This document shows positions 21,673 through 64,000 of a DNA stretch of 64,000 nt, in pieces. The notes beneath the pieces are model-generated. The model was not told the origin of the DNA and did no database searches. It saw nothing but the letters and a program-made list of their open reading frames with translations. The position numbers were made by a program, and so were the translations under genes. This DNA is from Rhodosorus marinus CCMP1338 (lineage: Eukaryota; Plantae; Rhodophyta): contig JAMWBK010000010.1 in NCBI GenBank assembly GCA_029953675.1, forward strand, positions 744,001 to 808,000, read 5' to 3'. Positions within the stretch are counted from its first letter, which is position 1; every line of letters begins with the position of its first letter.

Positions 21673-23335
21673 CCTTTCCTCTCCAAAGAAATACCGGAAA
21701 ACTCTCACTAGTCACAAGGTATACACAATCTACGGCAACACAAAAATCCAAACCACGTTCATTCACACTCTTCCCAACCAGCCCACGCTCCCAAACTGCT
21801 CCCCCTCGACGATCGTATAGTCTGTTATATAGGCCCCAGCTCCTCCCTCATCAGCAAGGAGTAACAATCAGACATTTTCTTTGGTCCAAAAAATCTCCAC
21901 TCCGAACAACCCCTCCTAAGAACACCCCATTAAATTTTCAATAGCTACAAATCACAAATAAAATAAGCCTTATTGAAAAACCTATCTACTTGCAAATACC
22001 CCCCTTCCAACCTCATCGTTGATTAAAAGGTTCTTGTAATCGTACCAAAATTAAGGCCCAACAAGATGAATTTTGATCTTGAGGGGGGTTCCATATTCCC
22101 AGAGCGTAAAACAGTATACAGCGAAAAAACAATGGCCTTTTGAGTAATCCCTGCAAATGAAGCATTAACAAACAGGGGTTCTCCTGTGACGCAGAAAGTC
22201 AGTTGGAGAATGATAATTCATTTGACCCCCCCTTATGATCTGCTCGCATGCAGAGGCTGTTCCCGTTCGATGCCTGGATAAATATATATTAATCAAGAGG
22301 TCGGAGGCGACCACCATCAAGTCGGGCAGCCTGGAGCCAGTCCAATACCACCCCTCCCCCTCGGGTGTAATTGGTGTGAAAAAGGAATCTTCACGGTCGG
22401 CTTTGATTTCCAATTGTTTTGTTAAGTATCGAGGAAATCCTGCGGCTCGGCTTCTTTCTTTTATCCAGTTATCGTCCACAGAACATAAATATTACTTTAT
22501 TATGACAAATTTTCAATAGTAGTCGATAGGGAAAATCAACTAAAATATCCTTAAATGTGGAATTTTTTTCCAAGTTCTTTAAATAGGTTGACATCTTTAG
22601 ACTGGATTCTGATGGAGGTTGGAATAATCTAAAGGAAAATTGCAATAGTTCCTAAAACTTGACCGATTAAGCAAAACTACCCAGATTGAGAATTTTGGTA
22701 GAGGATGAGTTCTTGAAATAGGTTCACCGGTGGGTGGCCTGCCCCGACAGCCTCTTTGGAGACGACATGGTTTGTACTGTGCGTCCTGAGCAGTGGTTGC
22801 TCCCCTACTAGCAGCAAGTACTCCCAAGCAATAAGTGATAAATCAAGGAGCCTGGTGAGAGCGGGAGCACAACATCATCAACACGCCGGCTTTTTCTAGA
22901 ATTGTACGCAAGGTGCTGACTCGAATGGATTTGGTGGCAGTCGCGGAACGCACTTGTCAAAGCTCTGTCACAGTGAGGGAGAGACGCTCCTCTAAACTTG
23001 ATATGATTGAAAGCTGGCTCACAAATTCTCAAGTGTAGGGACCGCGTGCGCAGGGTGAAGCCGCATCAGTAGGAAGAATTTCGAGCTGGGCCGGAGCTTT
23101 AGGAGTCTATCAAGTCGATTCGTAGTAAGCCTTCTGCTTTTCTGTATGCTGATGTATCCCACAGATTAGCTGCCCCTGAGCAGACAATCATGGAATACAT
23201 CTGCTAGCGGTTTATTTGTTCTTAGTCTTTCCTGTTCTGCCTATGCTGATGATCGAGGAGCACCACATAGTGCGAACCAGGAAACTGCGACGCGGTCCAG
23301 CTGAGCCAAGTCGAGGCGCACCTCAATTCTCAGAG

Positions 23336-24073
23336 ATGCTCAGGTACAGGATCATTGCGGCGATCACCCGCGATAGCAGAGGGATTGGAAAGGATGGGGT
23401 TATGCCATGGCCCAAACTGGGCGCGGATATGAAGCATTTTCGGGAGCTCACAGTGGGCGGCGTTGTTATCGTTGGCCGCGTTACCTTCGAGAAGATTGGT
23501 GTCTTGGAGAACAGGCTCAACGTGGTTCTTTGCAGATCACGAAATGAATACCGAGGGGAGAATCTGATCGGCGCTCGTTCACTGGAACAAGCCGAGATGT
23601 TGATCGGGTCTAGAGGTACGCATATGTGTTGAGTAAACATCAGAAACGGAAACTAATACTCACTACAACGTGACTCGCGTCTTCGCGCTGTCCGCCAATA
23701 TTTGCATCTCGTTGAAGACGCGCTAAACGTGATTGCCACTTTCCACACCTTGACGCCCGCCAGGATTTCAAGTAGCGAACATTATCGGGGGTCAATCAGT
23801 CTACAAGACGGCCTTTGAAGTTCCAAGATATAGTCAAAGACTGCACCTCACGGAAATAGAAAACTCGTACGAATGCGACAGGTTCTTCCCGGCGTTTCAC
23901 GATCACCAAAAGGTTCGACACCTCCCGAGAGCTGTCCAATCATCACTTACTCAAATATTTTGACTAGTGTTCGACATATGTCTCCTAAAACTACTATTAT
24001 TCAGATATTTGAGTCCGTACAGCATGAAGAAAACGGAATAAGATTCACATTTTCGGAATGGGAGGCTCGGTAG
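23336..24073 (+). CDS. Monofunctional dihydrofolate reductase, 165 aa, 3 exons
   Basis: Exons 23336-23615, 23764-23912 and 24005-24073 total 498 nt in frame. Motifs IIAA, GIGKDGVMPW, ADMKHFRELT, VGRVTF, NRLNVVL, IIGGQSVY, LTEI...CDRFFP, NGIRFTFSEW. Stop codon follows directly; no TS domain. Confidence 0.9.
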
Positions 24074-24383: not shown

Positions 24384-25631
24384 ATGACGGAGGAAGTTCA
24401 TTCTGAGACGAGGATGCCCGAGGAGATGGAAGGTGCCATCCCTATGGACGAGGAAGACGTGGTTTTGGACGAGCAAAACTGCGAAGTTATTGAGCTGAAC
24501 GAAGGTGACGGTGTAAATGATCACGATGATATGGACGAGGATGATGGGGAGGACGGTGAGGGGAGCCTTGACGAGCAGATTGATGACGATGTGGAGCCAG
24601 AAGCTGATGATACCATGATAGATCTGGAAGGGCACACTGAGTCCGTGTTCTGCGTAGTCTCATCACCCTCTGACAATAACGTCGTGGCTAGTGGTGGAGG
24701 CGATGACCGCGCGATTATTCACAACCTGAGGAACAACGAGGTGCAGGCCCAGATTCAGGACTTTGGGGACTCGGTCAGCGCCATTGCATTCAACCAGGAT
24801 GGAAAGCTGGTCGCGTTTGGAGGCATGAATGGAAGGATAGTGGTCGTTGATGTGGCCACCGGGAAGCCAGTTTACGAGCCAGAAGGGCCCGCAGCTTCCG
24901 TTGAATGGCTAGACTTTCACAGCCGCGGCAATTGGCTCATAGGAGGAAGCGCGGATGCTTTTGTGTACATGTGGAACGAGAAAGGAGAGAACGCTATGAT
25001 ATATTCGGGGCACGCGACGATCGTGTCTTGTGGTGGCTTCAGCCCAGACGGCCGCAGCATTGTCACGGGCTCGGAGGATGGCACGGTTCGCATTTGGAAT
25101 CCGAAGACCGGGGAATGTGTTGCCACCAGCGCACCAGCCAATTCAGAAAAGCCCGGCGTTTTATGCATGGATATGATGGACAACATCGCTATCGTGGGCT
25201 ACGAGGATGGGTCTGTTCGACTGGTCAATCTGTCGGATGCCGCCTTCATTGCTTCACTTCCCAGCCACGCTGGGAGCGTTGAGTGCGTCAAGTTTGGGGC
25301 ACCGGGTCTAGTGCCAAAGATATGCGCATCTACTGGGATGGATGGCGTGTTAAGGATCTGGGACATGGACCTGTCGAGAGAGCGCACATCTCTGGTACAT
25401 GGTGCAGGAGTGGTTGCTTGCAGTTGGCACCAGCAGAAACCCGAGCTTATTATCACTGCCAGTGTGGACAGAAAGGTTCACGTCTGGGACGCGAGGAAGG
25501 GGGAGCACGTCGCTGTTTTTATGGGAAATCGGAACACGATTCTGTCCATGGACATTGGCCTCACGGGAGAATATGTCGTGACAGGCAGCGATGATCACCA
25601 TGTGAGAGTATTCAATCTGTACCAGGCCTAA
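24384..25631 (+). CDS. WD40 protein, SQT1/AAMP-like uL16 (Rpl10) chaperone
   Basis: Intronless 415 aa; acidic N-terminus then LEGHTESVFCV...VASGGGDD and WD repeats ending GSDDHHVRVF. Confidence 0.85.
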   Translation: MTEEVHSETRMPEEMEGAIPMDEEDVVLDEQNCEVIELNEGDGVNDHDDMDEDDGEDGEGSLDEQIDDDVEPEADDTMIDLEGHTESVFCVVSSPSDNNVVASGGGDDRAIIHNLRNNEVQAQIQDFGDSVSAIAFNQDGKLVAFGGMNGRIVVVDVATGKPVYEPEGPAASVEWLDFHSRGNWLIGGSADAFVYMWNEKGENAMIYSGHATIVSCGGFSPDGRSIVTGSEDGTVRIWNPKTGECVATSAPANSEKPGVLCMDMMDNIAIVGYEDGSVRLVNLSDAAFIASLPSHAGSVECVKFGAPGLVPKICASTGMDGVLRIWDMDLSRERTSLVHGAGVVACSWHQQKPELIITASVDRKVHVWDARKGEHVAVFMGNRNTILSMDIGLTGEYVVTGSDDHHVRVFNLYQA

Positions 25632-25938: not shown

Positions 25939-27264
25939 CTACTCGCCCATGCCACGTCCCGCGAGAAAGCCAGTGGTCCACGCTCCTTGAAGGTTGAACC
26001 CTCCAGTAATGCCATCGTAGTCACAGATTTCTCCAGCAAAAAACAAGCCGGGAACAATCTTGCTTTGCATTGTACGCATGTCAATTTCCTTTAAAGGTAT
26101 GCCACCGCTCGTAACGAACTCTTCCTTGAACGCGCCTTTTCCTTCTACCGAAAATCTACACTCGTGAACTTCTTTCGCGAGCTTTCGCATTCCGTCGTTC
26201 TTGAGTTCCGCCCACGGACATTTCTCGTTCACTTCCGCCCTTCGGAGAAGCAACCTCCACAACCTAGCAGGAATGGCGCGGTACGGTGAAGCGCTCCCAA
26301 CCAACCGCTTCTGACCTCTTTGTCTTCGAAGGTCTTCAAACAGATCCAGAGTCTTCGCTTTACTCGTTTCCGGATACCAATCTATGTTCAGCCCCACCTG
26401 GTATCCGAGCTCCTTCAAGATTCTTGCCCCGAACGCGCTCAGTCGAAGTATCGCGGGACCTGAGAAGCCCCAGTGCGTAATGAGAGTCGGGCCTCTCTGC
26501 AGAAGTCCAGAATCTTGCCTCCGACGTCCAGTCCCTTTCGGTAAAACCAAATTCACCACCGTGTTCCCGACACTGACGCCTGCGAGCTCGTGAAGTTCTT
26601 TATCCTTAATCTTGAAAGTGAACAGGCTCGGAATGGGGGAAATAATGCTATGTCCCAACTGCTCCGCCCAGCGATAGCCCAGTTTGGAGGATCCAGTCGC
26701 AATGAGGACCTTGTCACAGTTCTCTGTAACCGGCGTTCCAGCTGCGCTTTTGAACACCACGCTGAATGGATTCTTGCCATTCCCAGTGGAGATATCTGTT
26801 ACTTTCGTTGATGCCGTCATCTGGACCCCGGATTCTCTGGCTGCTCGAACCAGAGCGTCCACGATCGTTGAGGAATCATCAGTAACTGGAAACATTCTTC
26901 CATCTTCTTCAGTCTTCAACTCGACGCCGCGGTTCTTGAACCATTCCACAGTATCGGCAGCATCAAATCCAGAAAAGGGTCCCCTCAGCTCCCTCCTGCC
27001 TCTTGGATATCCTCCTGACAGTGTCTCATGATTGAATGCAGCATGAGTCGTATTGCACCTTCCTCCACCGCTAATCCTTACCTTGTCCAAAAACTCCTTT
27101 CCGCCCTCCACGATTTTCACCCTCGCCTTCCCCCGCGCGGCACATTCTATCGCCGCGAAGAAACCAGCGGCCCCTCCACCCACGACGATCACCTTGTTCT
27201 CCGCAGAAATTCGGGATCTTATCCTCTTCGGATCCCAAACATTCAGTACAAAGGATACCATCAT
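25939..27264 (-). CDS. HI0933/YhiN (BaiN-like) NAD(P)/FAD-dependent oxidoreductase, probably plastid-targeted
   Basis: Intronless 441 aa; VVGGGAAG, KVRISGGGRCNTT, TEEDGRMFP, TLITHWGFSGPAIL, VTSGGI, GLFFAGEICDYDGITGGFNLQGAWTTG. Confidence 0.93.
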   Translation of the reverse strand: MMVSFVLNVWDPKRIRSRISAENKVIVVGGGAAGFFAAIECAARGKARVKIVEGGKEFLDKVRISGGGRCNTTHAAFNHETLSGGYPRGRRELRGPFSGFDAADTVEWFKNRGVELKTEEDGRMFPVTDDSSTIVDALVRAARESGVQMTASTKVTDISTGNGKNPFSVVFKSAAGTPVTENCDKVLIATGSSKLGYRWAEQLGHSIISPIPSLFTFKIKDKELHELAGVSVGNTVVNLVLPKGTGRRRQDSGLLQRGPTLITHWGFSGPAILRLSAFGARILKELGYQVGLNIDWYPETSKAKTLDLFEDLRRQRGQKRLVGSASPYRAIPARLWRLLLRRAEVNEKCPWAELKNDGMRKLAKEVHECRFSVEGKGAFKEEFVTSGGIPLKEIDMRTMQSKIVPGLFFAGEICDYDGITGGFNLQGAWTTGFLAGRGMGE

Positions 27265-43759: not shown

Positions 43760-45881
<2,122 letters not shown>

Positions 45882-53984: not shown

Positions 53985-54609
53985 CAGCTTACAGTCCCCG
54001 TCCCACCATCTGAAGCCATTAGTTGGCGAACTGCTACCTAACCAATCCAATCATATCTCTTATACTTATAAGCCGATGGTATTTCACCAATTGATATCCA
54101 TAACCTTCTCTAAATTCATGTTAGCAGATATAATTTGATAATACATAGACCAATTGAAACGCTTAAAATTTTAAACAACCAATACAAGAAGGAAAAGTAT
54201 GCCTATTGACTTGTATACACCAATTATGGTGCTTATATTATTAATGTTTCGATAATTTGTGTATCGGCGTGGGTGTCCCGGTTTTTGATTTTTTGCCTTT
54301 TGGGGTTGGGGGAAGACGAACAAGTGCTGTGGTTGAATTTCTGTGATCTCTGCAGGCATTTTTTTTGGGGGGTGGGGTTTGGGAATAGCTGGCTTTGCAG
54401 AAGCTTGTTTTGTTTTGTTTGAGTTCTTCTCTTGGCTATTGAAGCTTATGTGAACGTTTTGTTGCTTTGTTTATTGTGCGAATTCAGTTAGATGTTTTTC
54501 TTGTCGTCAGTTATGGATCAGCGAGGATTTTCTTATCTGACTGATGAGGATGCCTGGGAGTCGATGAGTGACTTGCTTATTGGAGTTTAAGAATTCGGGT
54601 GCTTGTTTC

Positions 54610-54639
54610 GTGTGTGTGTGTGTGTGTATGTGTGTGTGT
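54610..54639. repeat. (GT)n microsatellite with one interruption
   Basis: Direct reading; upstream of the ARF-GEF start. Confidence 0.85.
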
Positions 54640-54740
54640 TTCCCCCTTTTTTATTTTTCGCGCTCTGTTGCTGTTTTCGGGAACGTTTTGCGCTTCTATT
54701 TGCTTTGTGATTTTTGGTATTGGGGTTGTGGGGCCTTGGT

Positions 54741-57700
54741 ATGGATGCAACGGTGCTTGTGGCGTCGGGACATGCACGAGAGTTGCTGACACAGCTGAGG
54801 AGGAATTCGAGGTTTTCCGAATGGGGAGCTTCGTTCTCGTCGTCAAAGGAAGGAAAGCCTTTATCGCCCCTGGTACAGTCAGGCAGACTGCGAAAAGGAC
54901 TGCATCCAACGGAGCATCGATTCGTTCAGGACCTTAAGCATGTTAGAAGAGCACCAGGACATTCGAATCTGCTCCTCATGCTGCAGCCCTTTCTTGAAAT
55001 CATCCAATCTCCCGAGGCCAATGGGGTATGTTCCCTTCGTATCAAGCAGGCCGGATCCCAATAGATGACATCAGCGCGGAGAAAACCGTCGACGATCTGC
55101 TTTTACACGTCTGAGGCTGAAAATGTTCAAGTCTGATCTTCGGATTGCAGGTGATCACTTCCGCAGCTCTAAGAGCAGTGGTGGACATACTGGGAAGTGT
55201 ACAGGAAATCTCTGAGGTTCACAAAGTAGTAGGGAATGTGGTGGAAGCTGTGCATTCTTGTCGTTTCGAACCCACGGATGCCAGCGTAGACGAATTGGTC
55301 CTCTCCCGGATAGTCGAGGTAACGCAAATCGACGAACCAAGAAGCTCTAGAATTCTCGGGAAATGGGATATTTGTTTTCTGAGCCGCGCCTGTAACCCAA
55401 CGATCAAAAATTTCTGGTATTGCTTCTTTTTCAAGGTTCTCTCTGTGACAGTCACCGCAGAGAACTCTCCAGTATTATTTGATGAAATTATTCTTGCCGC
55501 GTTTGAGACATGTTTTCGTTTGTCAACCATCAAAAGAGCGACGGCGCTGCTCGTATCGGCGGCGACGAGAGAGCTCTCGTCCATAGTCGCTGCTGCCGTG
55601 AAATCACAGGTCTTAGAATCCAACAATTCTTCCTTGCATTTGCCTGCCGACTACTTTCGAAAACGCTTGAGGTCGAAAGGAAATGCTACGTTCGACTTTG
55701 AGAGAGACAAACTTAATCAAGAGCGGAGTTGTAGCTCCTATCCGCTGAGGGCGATGTTGCTGTTTGCCTCTTGCTTGGTGAGCAGGTCAAAGGGAGAAAA
55801 TGGGCACTGAATACGAAGAATATCTCGCTGACCATTCGCGTGCTGTCGTCGCTCTTGATTCTGCAGGTTGACCCGGCAATGAAGCTATCTGCATCGTTGA
55901 GAATGACAGGTCTCCAAATCCTGAACACAGCATTGACAACAAAGCATCGGAATGAAAAGGGTACTAGCGCTCTGTTGGCAGATTCAGAGATACGTGATTT
56001 TCTCTTGCGAGATGTTTCCATCTCAGTATTAAGGACACTTGGGCTTGCTTCTGAGGCGAGCGTCGTCATCGCCCAGGCTTTTACTGTAGTTAACAACCTC
56101 TTAGTCGTTCTCGGTAAGCTCATTCCTGGTTGGTCCCATTCGTTTTTGAGCACATTTGGCTGACGGGTGAAGTTGTTCGCGCATTTTTCCGCATTTTGCA
56201 GGGCCCTACGGACTGCCGTTGTTGGAAACTTTACTGCTGCGCGTGTTCCCATCTTATGTCGACGGGTCCTCTGGTAACCTTCCAGTGACTGTGCAGAACA
56301 GAGAGGTCGGGTTGGAGGCTCTGGCATGCTTAATGTCACAACCTGGGCTGCTTTCAATGGGTTTCGCCGCGATTGATTGTGAGCTCGGCCTTTCGCATTT
56401 CACGGAGCTTTTAGCGGAAATTCTCATTCTTGAATTGAAAAGTAACTGTTTGAATGGATCACTATTGTAGGCGATCCGGTTAAGGAGGACGCGGTGGGTC
56501 CTCTTGCTGAAAAACTGGGGAAAGCTGTAGAGAATTCAATGACGGAACAGGACAGACTCATTCAGAGCGGTCCAGATGCTGTGGACGACGCAGATGAGAT
56601 CTGGAACGAAATCATTGCGCCGGGGTTTCTGTGTGCTGATGCACTGCTCTCACTAACCGATTGGCTGGAGGAGAGGGTAAATGTGAGCTCGCTTGCTTTT
56701 CTTGCCCTAATGGACTAAGCATAGGCTCTGACGCATCGTTGGTTGCCCCTTAACTGCAGAGGAATCGCTCGACCGAGGAGAGCACTGCATACACGAAGCA
56801 GATTATGGAATCGAAGCGTCATAAGGATGAAAGCGCAAAGGCAGCTGCAGCCATCAACAAACTAGGATCAAAGGCAGACGGCAGACGCGTTCTCAACCTA
56901 CTTACCGAGTACAAAATTTTTGAGGATGAGCTCATGGCTGTAAAGGGATCTGATCTCGATCGGCTAATCCCGCCGGCCGCTGAATACTTTCGAGTCACAC
57001 CGAGCCTCGACAAGAGTGTCATCGGCACGGTGCTGGGTATGTCTGTGCCTCCGCGGAATGGAATCCATGCAGGTTGAAGCGTGCTAACACCGTCTGAACC
57101 TGGTTTTCGTGTGTTCCAAAGGCGAACCTGATGAGATCTCGCGGAAATTCCTTCAAAATTATACAAACTCTTTTGACTTCACTGACAATGACATAACTAC
57201 AGCGTTGAGAATATACCTGGAGTCTTTCAGGCTCCCAGGGGAGGCGCAGAAGATTGATCGGATCATGCACAGTTTTGCTAACCGCTACATGCTACAAAAT
57301 GAATCGAAAACTGAGCTGAAGAACACGGACGTAGCATACGTGGTTGCTTTCGCTATTGTTATGCTAAATACTGACCAACACAACGACTCTGTACGCTGTT
57401 CATCCCAAGGAAGCAACAATGTGTGATAGTGAGACCCGCGTGCTTTGGAGGCTAATTTTACCCTTTTTTCCCGCAGATTAAGAAAAAAATGTCTCTGGAG
57501 GACTTCGTTAGGAACAATCGTGGGATGAACGATACGGAGGACTTCTCGAAGGAGTTCCTTCTTGAGATCTTCGAGAGCATTAACGCTCTGGAGATCAAGA
57601 TGAGCAACGAATCCGGCATTGACGAGTTGAATGAAATCCTGTGGGAGAAGATGCTCCAGAGTGCTGGATATGTATCTGCGGGTTCAAATCGAAGCATGAC

Positions 57701-60700
57701 AGAAACAAGGTGAGGAAGAACAGGACAAACGGTTCAGTGCAGTCCGCCTTTCTTGACACTCATGCTGATACTCCGTCCTTGCGTTCTTCCTCTCTATTGA
57801 TAAAAGATTCCTTCCAGAGTCTCCTCAAGCTCCAGATTCTGAGCTGTTCAATCTGTCCTGGGCACCGATCGTGAGCTCCGCGAAGATGGTATTGGCAGTG
57901 GGGACGAACGAGAACGAAGTACAGAGAGCCATTGACGGATTTTTGCGCGTTGCGAGGTATAAATTGACACGAGTTGGGAGCGACCAATGTATACACTCTT
58001 AGGCTCCTGCCCGTTCACATGGCTTTTCTTCTTTAGGTGCTCCGCTTCGTTGCATACGGACCAAGCGATTGATGAATGCGTTGCGGCGCTTTCCGAAGCC
58101 TCCGGCTTGTGCTCCAGTCCTCTTTACGGAGCAGCAGTTCGTTTTGGGGTCGATGTCCGAGCACAGCTGTCCTTTGTCGCTCTGTCTGGAATTGTACGAA
58201 ACTGTGGAGATGGTGTCAGAGAAAACGGTAATCGTTTTTGTCGAAAACATGCAAGCACGGCATAAAGAGCGTATTGAAGCGAACTCATCCTTTTGTTATG
58301 CGGTTGATGTTCAGGATGGAGCCTGTTCTTGTCTTGCGCGACGCGTCTTCAATGCTTGGGCCTCTTAAGCTCTCCCGCATTTGACGAGATGAGTGGCTAC
58401 GGTCCAGAGCTAGTAGACCTGGCCTCGATGCCCATCGCAGTCAGCCGGCTTCAACCGGACTGGTGGCCCTCTCGAATATCCGCTTTGGAGAAGGACAATG
58501 GGTCCAAGCCGATCGGTGGGCAACGCGCTGTCCGACTAGAACTAGACTTCCGGCAATATATCTGACGCGGCGAGTTTTGTTTGTTGTCAAGCTGTGAGGA
58601 GGAATCGAAACGATCCATCGAACTCCTTTTGGGCGTTGCTGGGAGTAGGAAATAATGCTGTACCAGAATCAGACAATCCATACAGATTTGCACCAGAGTA
58701 TTTGATCTGCAGAAATTCTGCCGAAGTAAGCAGATTTCATGATCCACCGCGGGAAATATCATTGTTCTCATAAATGTTTCTGGACATGGATAGGAAGAGG
58801 CCCGCAATTTGGCTCAGAAGAGTGTTGAGGCCTGCCGCCTTGATGAAATCCTAGTCACTGAGAGCCGCATTCTTCAAGATGAATCGCTCGCAGCGTATGC
58901 TAGTGCAATTCGTACATCTGCATTGACGCTTCTGAGACACAAGGTCGGTATTCACAGGGCGAACAGGAAACCAGAGCAATCCAAGTCTCTATCTAAATGA
59001 CTTTTCCGTGGAACAGGCCGATACTCGGTTCAGAGGGTCAGGAATAGTCAGTATCTTGGAGCCGATTGAGGACGCAGAAGATGACACGGAGGTAGCGAAA
59101 TACTCCGCTCTTTCGTTCCTTATGGATCTTCTCACAGAGTTGACGCTTCGGAATCGAACAAGGGTGGGCCTAGTCTGGACCCACTTTCGTGAGGTATGCG
59201 TCGGTTGACACTGATTCATAACTCATCGGAATAAGTGGCTTACCCGGGAACCTCTAACATCTTGAACCGCAATGAACAACAAGGTTACCCAATGGCTTCT
59301 TGCGGACTCCTCATCAACTACGGTTGTCACAGAGAGAGCTGCTGTGGCGCTGCTTCGAGTTTCTGTTCGGCTGCTCCACCAGGACGATGTTCGCGACGAC
59401 GTCTTGCGGGGTTTGAACCTCCTATTGAAGTTGGATCAGGACAATTTCGCGACGCTTGCACTGCCCGTTGCCGCCGGTGTTCTCCACTGTATCAGGACGC
59501 ACTCTTCACAAATTCGAAAACCGAGCGCTTGGCACACGCTGTTGTCCATCATCGAATTGTTGCAGAGGTACCTTTTTCATTGAAATCGGAGCAGCGGGTG
59601 CGTTTCCCGTGTTTTGGCAATGCGCTAACTCAGAGTTTGGTCTGACATTCAATCCGCAAAGGTTTCCTAGCCCTTGCTTGGAGCTTGGCTTTGAGTCACT
59701 GCGGTTTTTACTGCTCGATGCTGTTGAAGTCTCTGCAGTCGCACTGGAGACTTTTTCGCCTTTCATCGACGCCGTGCTTGCGTATGCTCTGTCAACATCA
59801 TCTACCGCCACGGCTTCTTTGGAGCTATTCTACGCGCTAGCCGAGAAGGTTCCATCAGTGCAGCGTGGCTACTCTGAGGTATTGACTGGGATTCCGAACG
59901 TCATAACGCGAGAATTCAGCTGCTCATTGGGTTTGGGTTCCATTTTACCGCTGTAGGACTCGCCTAGGAAGGAAGACAACTCGAGATGGGCGGAGCTCTG
60001 GAAACCACTGCTTCAGGCAATTGCTCAGGTTGTATTGCAGTCAGCAGAGTGGGAGATACGGCTTCACGCACTTGCAGTAGTTGAGCGCCTGAGCGCCGCT
60101 CAGGACGGTGAGAGGGCGCTGACTTCAGCCGAATATCGCCTGGCTATAGAGAATGTAGTTCTGCCCATGGTTGCTACCGTCTTCGACACGACAAAGGCCA
60201 ATTCCACGGCCGAATTCTCGTTCAAGATCCGGCAGAAGGCTGTGACGCTTGTTCTGAAAACTTTTCTGCAGCACCACGTTGGGCTTTACAACGACCTAAC
60301 GAGGGAACAATTTGCACAGCTGTGGCTAACGATTCTGGAAGGTACCGCGGGGAACCTGGACAACGCCAGTGACGGAGTCGCAGAGTACTTCAACGAGAGT
60401 CTTAAGAACCTCCTCCTCGTAAGTGTATATGGTCCACACACTTGAAGTCTTTTTCGTTAAGCCCACTAATGCTGGAGGACGGTTTTGATTGATTGGCCTC
60501 AGGTAATGGAAACTAACGAGGTGCTTACAAGGAGTGACACCGTCCTCTGGGAAAAGACCGCTACTTCCATCAAGAAATGGCTTCCGTCACTATACGAGGA
60601 GAAGTTCATGGATACTGAGCCAGATAAACTAATCCAAGAGGTTCCCGACGCGCAACTGCTACCTGTTGAAGAAGACGAACAGGTAGACCCGGCAACACTT

Positions 60701-60748
60701 TGCTTCCTTTCTTTTGATGTCGCGCTGGTAAGGGTTGTTGACAAGTGA
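54741..60748 (+). CDS. GBF1: Large Sec7 ARF guanine-nucleotide exchange factor, GBF1/GNOM type, multi-exon
   Basis: DCB region LQPFLEIIQSPEANGVITSAAL...SCRFEPTDASVDELVL; Sec7 ALRIYLESFRLPGEAQKIDRIM...AFAIVMLNTDQHN...EDFVRNNRG; HDS-like C-terminus ESLKNLLLVM. Confidence 0.93.
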
Positions 60749-61212
60749 GTGCTCTTGCGAAGCTCAGGTCCCGGTAGCAGATGAACCAAAAGGCCCTGAG
60801 AACGGTTCCTCTAGTGCGAGTTTGCCAGAGTAGCCATGGTGCTCCCCTTCGTTTCCGTTATATTTAATGCCAGATCGTGCCTAGTCGCGATCAAGTCCAA
60901 CGGCTAGGGGCGTCAGCGACGAGTAATTTGTTTTGTCTGCGCTCTCCTTGGACGTGAGAATAGTGTGTCTGAGCACTTGATTCCTTAGACACGTTGCCAT
61001 GAGTGGATTGTCAATGCTAACTGATAATGAATGCTAACTCACACTACCTAAGCAACTGCACGAGTCCACCAGAAAAGAGATGAGCAGGAGCTCTATGGCT
61101 TGATCAGGACACGTCGACGCGAGTTCGCATAGCCTTATACCAGCTAGTCAACTCCGCGCTGTTGACGAGGCTGGACAACTACCCAGTCTCTCCGAGGGGA
61201 CAACCGCAGTAG

Positions 61213-61661
61213 GTAGGAAATTACAAGATATTCTTCTAAAGAAGCCTAAGGGACCTGCTACGACCTCGGCCTTCTTCCTTACTCCTGACTCGGATATCCG
61301 ACATACTGCAAGCAAAGGGGGGCAGTCGCAGTATGTAGGAAACTACCAGATATTATTCTAAAGAAGCCCCCCCAGAGGACCAGAGGGACCCTTGCTATCT
61401 CCTTGACCTTCTTCCTCACGCCTGACTTAGATATCGGACATACTGCAAGCAAGGGGGGCAATCGCAGTATGTAGGAAATTACCTTCTCAAGAAGCCAAAG
61501 GGACCCTCGCTATCACCTTGACCTTCTTCCTTACTCCCGAATTGAATATCGACATACTGCAAGCAAGGGGGGCAATCGCAGTATGTCAGGAAAGTACCAG
61601 ATATTCTTCTAAAGAAGCCAAAGGCTTGCTCGCTATCACCTTCACCTTCTTCCTCACCTGA
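61213..61661. repeat. Tandem array of about 3.6 diverged copies of a 114-136 bp unit
   Basis: Copies start near 61213, 61335, 61471 and 61585. Conserved blocks GTAGGAAA, AAGAAGCC, CCTTCTTCCT, ACATACTGCAAGCAA-G run-GCA.TCGCAGTAT. Confidence 0.92.
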
Positions 61662-62410
61662 AGTGGTGGGAATTTTGACTGATACTCTTCTAAGAATATA
61701 GAAAGCCTTCGGAAAGGGAAAAAGGGGGAGGGAGGGGGGGCGGAGTGCTTTGAAAAGCGGGAAGGGAAGCAGAGCTCTCAAATACGGAACAGGTGCGGAA
61801 CGGAAGAGTCTAAGGAAGAAGATTTACTTATTTAATTCACGAAGGAAGAGGGGGAAGATTGGAAAGCGAGCTGAGAAGGGAACTGCTAAGTTGAAAAATT
61901 ACGGATGAAGAGGTGAAGGGAGGGTTGAGAGGGAGGGGGATATTGTGAAAGTTTTGGAAGGGGGTGATTGTTGCCCTTCAAGCGCATTTTGTTTCTTGGT
62001 TCGTTTTAAGAGCCGAGAGGGTTTTCCATGGAGTAAATGCTGGTGTTTGGTTTTGTTATTTTGATACGGAATGGGTCTTCTGGGAACGGCGTTTCTGAAA
62101 TTACCTTATGTTCTCGGGTTTGAGCTTTAAGGGGGGGCGGTGAGGGGTTTTGACTGTGTTGGAAGGTTTTGCTTGAGAAGAGTGTAACATCATGAAACTA
62201 CAGGAGGCGGAAGGCAATAGATACCTTTTTGAATTACGAGTGTTATGGTTTGGGTGAGGATGATTTCTTTGAGAGTGTGGACAAAGAAGACGCGAGAGTT
62301 TTTGGACAAGGATTTCGTCCGATTTTTTGATGGGGGTCTGGTTGCCGGAGAAGAAACCAGCGGTTTGGAGTTACTCAGAAGTTGGAGAGTAGCTGTAAAA
62401 GTATAGAAAC

Positions 62411-64000
62411 ATGGGGGAAAATGAAGATCGATTCGACAAATTTGACGGGAAACCGACCTCTGATTTTAACGGATGGCTGCGGAGCCTGGAGATGCGTCTC
62501 GAGCGGGAAGGCCTTTGGGACGTTGTCAGCGATTATTTCCAATCGGAAGGTGGAAACAAGAGGTCCTCTGGAAGCCATGCGGTGATGTCTGAAACTAGAA
62601 TGGAGTCCTTTAAAGACCCCGCAGTTGTCATGAAGGAAGGAAAGGCTTCCGCGCTGATTATCGAGGCCCTAGAGGAAAGGCCCCTCGCAATCGTTAACGG
62701 TTTTCTCCGAGATCCAGTCGAGATGCTTAACCGATTGAGGGAGCAGTACTCCATAGCAGATACGTTAGTTCAGTTGGCAGTTCAGGATGAATTGTTCGCT
62801 CTGGAATATTGCGGCGGAGATATCCTCGAGTACATCGAAGAGTTCGATGGTTGCGTCAGCCGTTTGCTAATAGCGGAACCGGACTTTCCGCAGGAATTGA
62901 TTCTCAAGCAATTTTTCGAATCGCTGCGGAGCTTGTACGACACTCCGAGGCTGCATTTGCTGCGACGACAACATCTGACTGATCTGCACTGGGATAAAGT
63001 GTCGAGAATTCTCGTCGCAGAGGCAAATATTATTGCGAATCGCAGGCGGAACCGGAAGTCAACTCGCAGTGTCGCAAAAACGGGACCTTCCATCTCTAAA
63101 GTGATCACCGGGCCAGATGCATCGGACGCGGTTGCTGTTGGGGTGCTCGCGAAGAAGAAAAGCCCTGATCCGTCTCATGAAACCTCGGAGAACAACGTAA
63201 ATGAACAAAACGTCCACGAGCGAGTTCCTGTCTCTGCAACTAACTTGCAACTTGTGGAAAAGTCGAAAATGGTCGCCGCAGATGCGGGTTTGTCACAGAA
63301 TGCACTCCCGGGGCGAGAGAACGTTTCCGTAGACGAACGGAAAAGCTTGGAAGTGCCTACTCCGAAGGCACCGATTGCCGCTGAGGAAAGAACTAGTGAT
63401 CAGCAGCCCTTACCAGCGATGCAAGTTGCAGAACGTACGATGACGGCGGCACAGTCATCCCATACCGAACAGGAGCCGATTGAGGCACTGGAGTCCAGCA
63501 AGCAGGGTACAGCGGGCGAACCTGTCGCAAGCCTGAGGCTGTCACCCAAACTACGTGCCTTGCAATCGAGCAAACCTCGCGAAACAGGAAAACCCGCTGG
63601 TGCGGAGCGTTCGAGCTCGAAGTCTGTCGGTGACCAAGCTGGTCACCGACAAGTGGCAAGGGACACGCAATCGACTGACAAGAACATGGAATCCGATACA
63701 GAAAACAAGAGTCGCGTGGATTCACGTGACGTCAAGAGAGAGAGGAACATTGTCGAGCGTGAAGTACAAAAGCAACCAGTTCAGAAACCGAAACTGCCGC
63801 AATCGACGACAGCGACATGTGGAGAGCAGCGAGTAGAACCGGAACAAGGAGCTGAGGCTGATTCCGATAGTACGGAGACGGACACTAGCACGGAGAGGAA
63901 CCTGGTAGCGGAAGTTGAGCGATTGAGCGGTGGTGACAACCAGCACTCGTCCCCCGCCAAGAGCCCTAGAGCTGGTGGCTCGACTTCACAGGGAGCTACA
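62411..64000 (+). mobile_element. Ty1/Copia Gag-like ORF, open to the window end (530 codons, no stop); retroelement or domesticated gag
   Basis: MGENEDRFDKFDGKPTSDFNGWLRSLEMRLEREGLWDVV...KASALIIEAL...EMLNRLREQY...LFALEY...DILEYIEEFDGCVSRL...FFESL...LHWDKVSRILVAE matches the Copia gag (UBN2/Retrotran_gag_2) pattern; followed by about 320 aa of low-complexity sequence. Confidence 0.8.

Follow-up and report, generated by a model that had tools for sequence, protein, structure and literature searches.

What is the long open reading frame (ORF) that runs off the 3' end of a 64,000-nucleotide stretch of the Rhodosorus marinus CCMP1338 genome: the gag gene of a retrotransposon, or a host gene that descends from one? 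The stretch, referred to below as the window, belongs to contig JAMWBK010000010.1 of assembly GCA_029953675.1, and coordinates are those of the window. R. marinus CCMP1338 is a stylonematophycean red alga with a genome of 31.2 Mb, 15% repeats and 8392 gene models produced by RNA-seq-trained BRAKER (PMC10250338). We lean, with somewhat better than even confidence, towards a genus-restricted, expressed and conserved nuclear gene of a single exon that lacks pol and descends from the gag of a Ty1/Copia retrotransposon. The loss of pol and the independent transcription are seen in a sister strain, in which a transcript of 4784 nt encodes only a protein of 1440 amino acids.

All 530 codons are open from the ATG at 62411 through base 64000, as the first-pass annotation of the window had reported, and an in-frame TAA lies 5 codons 5' of this ATG. 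The remaining five frames of the same 1590 nt contain 7 to 32 stops. A stretch of this base composition would stay open for 530 codons with a probability of about 1.4e-11, and 20000 shuffles gave no frame that was open throughout. The annotated gene of the assembly begins at exactly the same position and on the same strand, a mapping that was checked by sequence identity, and its product comprises 1477 amino acids; the window therefore contains only about the first third of the gene. Without introns, the gene would end near window-equivalent 66844, or contig position ~810,844. The record of the 1477-residue product names no Pfam family, whereas the records of the neighbouring genes name theirs (Sec7, DEAD/Helicase_C, DHFR-TS and others). 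Transcription of the CCMP1338 locus is implied solely through the RNA-seq-trained BRAKER model.

The N-terminal part of the protein is a Copia-type capsid (CA) domain. A Copia Gag signature had been proposed for the first ~205 residues, and the Pfam family Retrotran_gag_2 (PF14223, "gag-polypeptide of LTR copia-type", LTR standing for long terminal repeat) indeed matches residues 27 to 205 (62489-63025) with an E-value of 1e-7 and 32 bits, the curated cut-off being 27 bits. A family profile, with the R. marinus gag-like sequence as first row and 30 short relatives, matched the solved protein of the Drosophila Copia virus-like particle (VLP), 8VVW, with an E-value of 2.5e-24 over positions 6 to 255, and 8S41 with an E-value of 3.6e-16. 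Searched as a single sequence against PDB sequences, the gag-like protein returned noise only (best E=0.13), and the single-sequence AlphaFold2 model of the CA domain, with a pLDDT (predicted local distance difference test) score of 40, was unusable. On this sequence evidence we regard the homology of the domain to the Copia capsid as secure.

What follows the CA domain departs from a usual Copia Gag. A canonical CX2CX4HX4C zinc knuckle is found immediately 3' of CA in nine of the 31 profile sequences, and is missing there from the R. marinus protein. The motif scan of residues 1 to 530 detected neither this knuckle nor a looser form of it, and no D[ST]G, HHCC or YxDD motif. Cysteines occur only three times in these residues, at positions 134, 148 and 470. 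Residues 223 to 530 are abundant in S, A, E, V, R, T, K and P, and matched no Pfam family at E<=10. Composition and motif scan thus agree with the earlier description of an S/E/T/K/R-rich remainder devoid of knuckle, protease and integrase motifs.

The gene beyond the window can be read from its relatives. An exhaustive search with HMMER, over 1.84 billion cluster representatives, matched 42 proteins: one close relative (P0001), and 41 others that are at most 42% identical and align to the Gag domain only. P0001 comes from the R. marinus transcriptome MMETSP0011. It has 1437 residues and is 74% identical to the query (E=3.6e-231), residues 1 to 530 of the query being aligned to residues 1 to 526 of the subject, and it represents the only close 50% cluster in the collection. 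The 1440-residue protein P0043 (UniProt A0A7S3EKK8), from a re-assembly, differs visibly from P0001 only by three extra N-terminal residues. Its ORF of 1440 codons needs 4323 nt of the transcript, so that at most 461 nt lie outside the ORF and there is therefore no room for pol.

Five of the more distant relatives (P0005, P0008, P0013, P0024 and P0034) are ordinary Copia polyproteins, in which Retrotran_gag_2 is joined to Pol_BBD, gag_pre-integrs, rve and SH3_retrovirus, and in two of the five also to RVT_2. The Gag-Pol relatives examined originate from ENA, Logan or JGI metagenome-type sources, and none bears a Rhodosorus label. Scans of viral contigs and of JGI metagenome contigs yielded no relatives; because both peptide patterns used in the scan occur in P0043, the P0043 transcript is absent from the JGI contig collection. 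A word-seeded protein search with the 530 residues (at most 8000 candidates considered), the Gag domain alone and an exon of GBF1, the upstream neighbour, as queries gave no match, its index evidently being without the MMETSP/EukProt entries matched by HMMER. That search missed the 74%-identical relative of 1437 residues as well as about 40 Gag homologs, and its negatives are weak evidence for eukaryotic windows.

Compared in full length with Pfam at E<=0.01, P0001 gave no match, and four segments of it at E<=10 gave none except a meaningless one to SLX9 (E=0.38). Its residues 223 to 1370 are abundant in S, A, E, R, G, K and P, strongly hydrophilic and poor in order-promoting residues, with no internal repeats. 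The last 100 residues comprise an acidic-aromatic patch (EDANEDYDYEEDYEYPLEE), the basic clusters RKKKR and KRRKR, and a CX2CX3HX3C motif (CATCKRAHPGTC). The latter occupies residues 1389 to 1400 and takes three of the seven cysteines of the protein; its chance expectation is 3.5e-5, and none of 20000 shuffles reproduced it. It does not match Pfam zf-CCHC. We infer from this one strain that the motif is a degenerate nucleocapsid (NC) knuckle, displaced by ~1160 residues from the capsid domain. The first-pass statement that the gene lacks a zinc knuckle is thus correct for residues 1 to 530, but the full-length relative has a knuckle-like CX2CX3HX3C motif with basic flanks ~1160 residues further on.

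The architecture of the gene is more likely, judging from the relative, to be a CA domain, a giant disordered insert and an NC-like end, rather than a CA domain with a plain tail. The protein would begin with the N-terminal Copia capsid domain of ~215 residues and a short basic linker at the usual site of the zinc knuckle. It would continue with ~1150 disordered residues rich in S, A, E, R, G and K, as predicted beyond residue 530 from the 74%-identical relative, and would end, again as in the relative, with the acidic-aromatic patch, the two basic clusters resembling nuclear localization signals (NLS-like) and the non-canonical CX2CX3HX3C knuckle at the C-terminus. The initial suggestion, a Copia capsid captured by the host and joined to a disordered tail, gains support for its first part, from the pol-less colinear relative, the 1477-residue product without Pfam family and the host-like codons and leader described below; its plain tail has become less likely. 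The features within the window are collected in Table 1.

Table 1. Features of the gag-like locus of R. marinus CCMP1338, in window coordinates.
Feature	Coordinates	Strand	Basis
G-rich, C-poor leader / putative promoter region	61700..62410	+	base skew like that of host leaders, from which the role is predicted
Gag-like gene, codons 1-530 (5' third)	62411..64000	+	open frame; annotated gene of 1477 codons; 74% colinear identity to the 1437-residue P0001
Copia-type Gag capsid (CA) domain, residues 1-215	62411..63055	+	PF14223 above gathering score; profile match to 8VVW
Cys-free basic linker NRRRNRKSTRSVA (basic stretch NRRRNRKSTRS)	63038..63076	+	sits where relatives have the CCHC knuckle
Start of long low-complexity, predicted-disordered region, residues 223-530 of ~223-1400	63077..64000	+	composition; 67% identity to P0001

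Decayed pol was considered as the origin of the tail and ruled out: not even a faint Pfam match appears at E<=10, the composition is of the disordered type, and the knuckle comes after the tail and not before it.

The two strains allow the conservation of the frame to be assessed. Between CCMP1338 and the R. marinus of MMETSP, a WD40 protein is 91% and a flavin adenine dinucleotide (FAD)-dependent protein 94% identical. Window positions 24384-25631 and 25939-27264, compared with the MMETSP proteins P0071 and P0073, give this housekeeping identity of 91-94%. The strains filed as "Rhodosorus marinus" are, by these identities, probably different species. In the gag-like protein the CA domain (residues 1 to 222) is 82% identical to the sister-strain protein and the tail (residues 223 to 530) 67%, and P0001 and the CCMP1338 gene look like a faster-evolving ortholog pair. 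Open frames of 1437 and 1477 codons are kept in the two lineages. The three indels between the proteins comprise 1, 2 and 3 codons and are all in frame, for which the chance is ~0.04. The part of the tail within the window has accumulated ~101 amino-acid differences in 308 codons; from the nonsense-to-missense ratio of the genetic code (~0.06), ~6 stops would be expected if the tail were neutral, and none is seen. These counts of differences, rather than a ratio of nonsynonymous to synonymous substitution rates (dN/dS), suggest that the frame is under purifying selection.

How such a protein could work is constrained by its size. In the shells of retroelements, the NC and the C-terminal end of CA are directed to the interior. 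The Copia VLP is a T=9 shell of 540 subunits with a diameter of 48.6 nm (bioRxiv 10.1101/2024.02.21.581285). By a volume estimate, 540 tails of ~1260 residues need ~9x10^4 nm3 even when fully compact, whereas the interior of the shell offers ~3x10^4 nm3; therefore, the protein on its own probably cannot close a Copia-type particle. Drosophila Copia Gag (8VVW, 8S41) has a homologous CA domain, but it is ~270 residues long, bears a canonical CCHC knuckle right after CA, is encoded within a Gag-Pol element and assembles into closed T=9 shells. The R. marinus protein has no knuckle at that place and no pol, and its tail is too bulky for such a shell.

We propose that the capsid domain would mediate self-association, while the basic, knuckle-bearing C-terminus would confer nucleic-acid binding and nuclear targeting. 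The protein might then serve as an oligomeric nuclear scaffold. It might also be a decoy that co-assembles with Copia Gag lattices and poisons them, as a Gag-derived restriction factor like Ty1 p22 or Fv1. Scaffold and decoy appear to be the two most likely roles. The full proposal, to which we give slightly less than even weight, is that a Copia capsid was captured by a red alga, acquired a disordered insert of ~1150 residues before a degenerate knuckle and now acts as a nuclear scaffold or as a capsid-poisoning restriction factor unable to close a particle; no such capture would have been known before except in plants and fungi.

The most serious alternative, which we hold to be unlikely, is that the frame belongs, as gag ORF, to an LTR retrotransposon which is still transposing or did so recently. 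Such an element could be non-autonomous and of the TR-GAG type, with gag alone and mobilised in trans, or it could have pol in a separate ORF downstream of the gag stop. The protein is a bona fide Copia Gag, and the NC-like knuckle with basic flanks retained by its relative is what one would expect of a functional Gag; the ~1150-residue insert, on the other hand, is too large for the inside of a Copia-type shell. Gag-only LTR elements are known in plants, where TR-GAGs, like the R. marinus gene, have a single Gag-only ORF (PMC4350172). TR-GAGs measure less than 4 kb with an ordinary-sized Gag and are multicopy, with LTRs, a primer-binding site (PBS) and a polypurine tract (PPT) (PMC4350172), whereas the R. 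marinus ORF alone spans 4.4 kb, without a PBS or a second copy in the window. The sister-strain messenger RNA also speaks against an element with pol, since its 4784 nt hold the 4323-nt ORF and no pol. No autonomous partner is evident either: there is one close 50% cluster, and the Gag-Pol relatives examined are not labelled as Rhodosorus. Should the locus prove to be a gag-only LTR element after all, its interest would be modest, as a non-autonomous Copia derivative of unusual size.

The surroundings of the gene were inspected for signs of such an element. The region from 60.8 to 62.4 kb, searched with a tolerance of 2 mismatches, gave no PBS of the initiator methionine (iMet) type, the tRNA set of R. 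marinus itself not being part of the comparison; the absence of a canonical tRNA-Met site upstream had been noticed before. Within the 64 kb there is no second copy of the gag-like region at the DNA or protein level, none of the upstream 1.6 kb, no Copia pol-like sequence and no tRNA gene. No Rfam family was detected at 60-64 kb, and a bacterial promoter/terminator scan of the intergenic region was uninformative.

Leader and codon usage resemble those of host genes, which also disfavours an LTR element. The 400 nt 5' of the ATG contain G at 0.33 and C at 0.12, a skew of +0.48, and four host genes of the window (nucleoporin, WD40, GBF1 and DHFR-TS) have similar leaders, with skews of 0.29-0.41 over 400 nt, in line with the G-rich, host-like leader of the first description. 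The excess of G over C may be a general feature of promoters or 5' untranslated regions in the R. marinus genome. The relative synonymous codon usage (RSCU) of the gag-like ORF correlates with that of the pooled host genes at 0.47, within the leave-one-out range of the host genes (0.23-0.52). At 61700-61960 a purine-rich tract with long G runs (e.g. GGGGGAGGGAGGGGGGGCGG) is followed by a G/T-rich stretch that reaches the ATG.

Several points weigh against a captured host gene, and a number of them favour the LTR element. Four tandem units of ~120 bp (115-136 bp, 61-87% alike) are positioned at 61196-61657, 750-1200 bp upstream, within the 1.6 kb that separate the stop codon of GBF1 from the gag-like gene. 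Each unit has a short inverted repeat (ATATCGGACATACTGC / GCAGTATGTAGGAAAT). Tandem repeats are frequent in the U3 regions of LTRs, and these could be a minisatellite, a promoter element or the remnant of a U3. About two thirds of the gene and its 3' flank lie beyond base 64000, where a separate pol ORF or a 3' LTR could be located, and the single-copy count covers the 64-kb window, not the 31-Mb assembly. An active retroelement would conserve the frame of its gag too, so that frame conservation alone does not separate gene from transposon. Orthology with the MMETSP protein is deduced from divergence and colinearity, not from synteny. The C-terminal knuckle and the NLS-like clusters are known from the relative alone, in one strain. 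Finally, the gene is known from Rhodosorus only, and any co-option is therefore young.

The confinement to one genus would also suit a gag relic that was immobilised recently and is transcribed but functionless, its frame open by chance or under weak constraint and heading for decay. The tail evolves 4-5 times faster than the two housekeeping proteins, and the canonical knuckle has been lost, as might be expected of a relic. We nonetheless find this improbable: 1437 and 1477 codons have stayed open in two lineages with differences of 6-9% between their housekeeping proteins, every indel is in frame and the CA domain is 82% conserved, whereas neutral decay at such divergence should bring many stops and frameshifts. 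An annotation or assembly artefact, such as a chimeric gene model or a frame kept open by composition, is effectively refuted, for although the purine-rich, T-poor tail (T 0.19) lowers the number of stops, the probability of openness is ~1e-11 even with that composition and the shuffles were never open throughout, the other frames have their 7-32 stops, and the same colinear protein is encoded in an independent transcriptome of another strain.

The favoured reading, a host gene derived from a Copia gag, has few counterparts. To our knowledge, nearly all well-studied domesticated capsid genes derive from animal Ty3/Gypsy elements. Arc, PNMA, RTL/SIRH and PEG10 of animals are likewise host genes built on a retroelement CA, some with a knuckle and some with disordered extensions. 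They differ from the R. marinus gene by their Ty3/Gypsy origin (Metaviridae, not Pseudoviridae), their kingdom, their demonstrated functions and their deep orthology. A survey of 2011 eukaryotes reported 14 deep events of gag co-option, four of them from Ty1/Copia (two in plants, two in fungi), and no algal or protist case, groups that its authors call under-sampled (PMC8321522). The four Copia-derived genes, Crtg9 and Crtg10 of plants and Crtg12 and Crtg13 of fungi (Wang & Han 2021, PMC8321522), are the closest in kind: like the R. marinus gene, they are stand-alone derivatives of a Copia gag that have lost pol, are expressed and are kept between lineages. The Crtg genes are conserved above the family level, with analyses of selection and expression, whereas the R. 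marinus gene is known from one red-algal genus. The disordered insert of ~1150 residues is a feature of the R. marinus gene, unlike the Crtg genes.

For the decoy role, the copy-number control proteins p22/p18 of Ty1, mouse Fv1 and sheep enJS56A1 offer precedents. They are pol-less, Gag-derived proteins that disturb the capsid assembly or uncoating of related elements, a mechanism that the R. marinus protein might share. Ty1 p22, though, is produced internally by an active Ty1 and is not a separate gene, and no autonomous Copia element related to the gag-like gene is known so far from Rhodosorus.

If the favoured reading is true, co-option would extend to the Rhodophyta, through an expressed and conserved Copia gag without pol in a compact genome of 31 Mb. 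The gene would also offer a young, one-genus case for studying how co-option begins. The combination of a capsid domain, a giant disordered insert and a knuckle poses a testable question, namely how a capsid fold that is unable to close a shell is repurposed.

The upstream neighbour of the gag-like gene is a GBF1-like ADP-ribosylation factor guanine nucleotide exchange factor (ARF-GEF) gene at 54741-60833 on the + strand, which encodes 1473 amino acids with a Sec7 domain. Reconstructed from its annotated span and length, it has 17 introns forced by frame changes, and the sole fitting single-intron completion removes 54873-55150. This excision drops an open segment that encodes ...LLLMLQPFLEIIQSPE..., presumably a conserved N-terminal GBF1 motif. 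The published GBF1 model may thus skip a real exon, as this tentative reconstruction suggests. A (TG)n-like microsatellite at ~54590-54660, just 5' of the GBF1 start codon, translates as CVCVCVCVCV. The window further contains two genes with a DHFR domain, 20 kb apart and both on the + strand: a stand-alone DHFR of 196 residues at 23243-24073 and a bifunctional DHFR-TS of 494 residues at 43850-45881.

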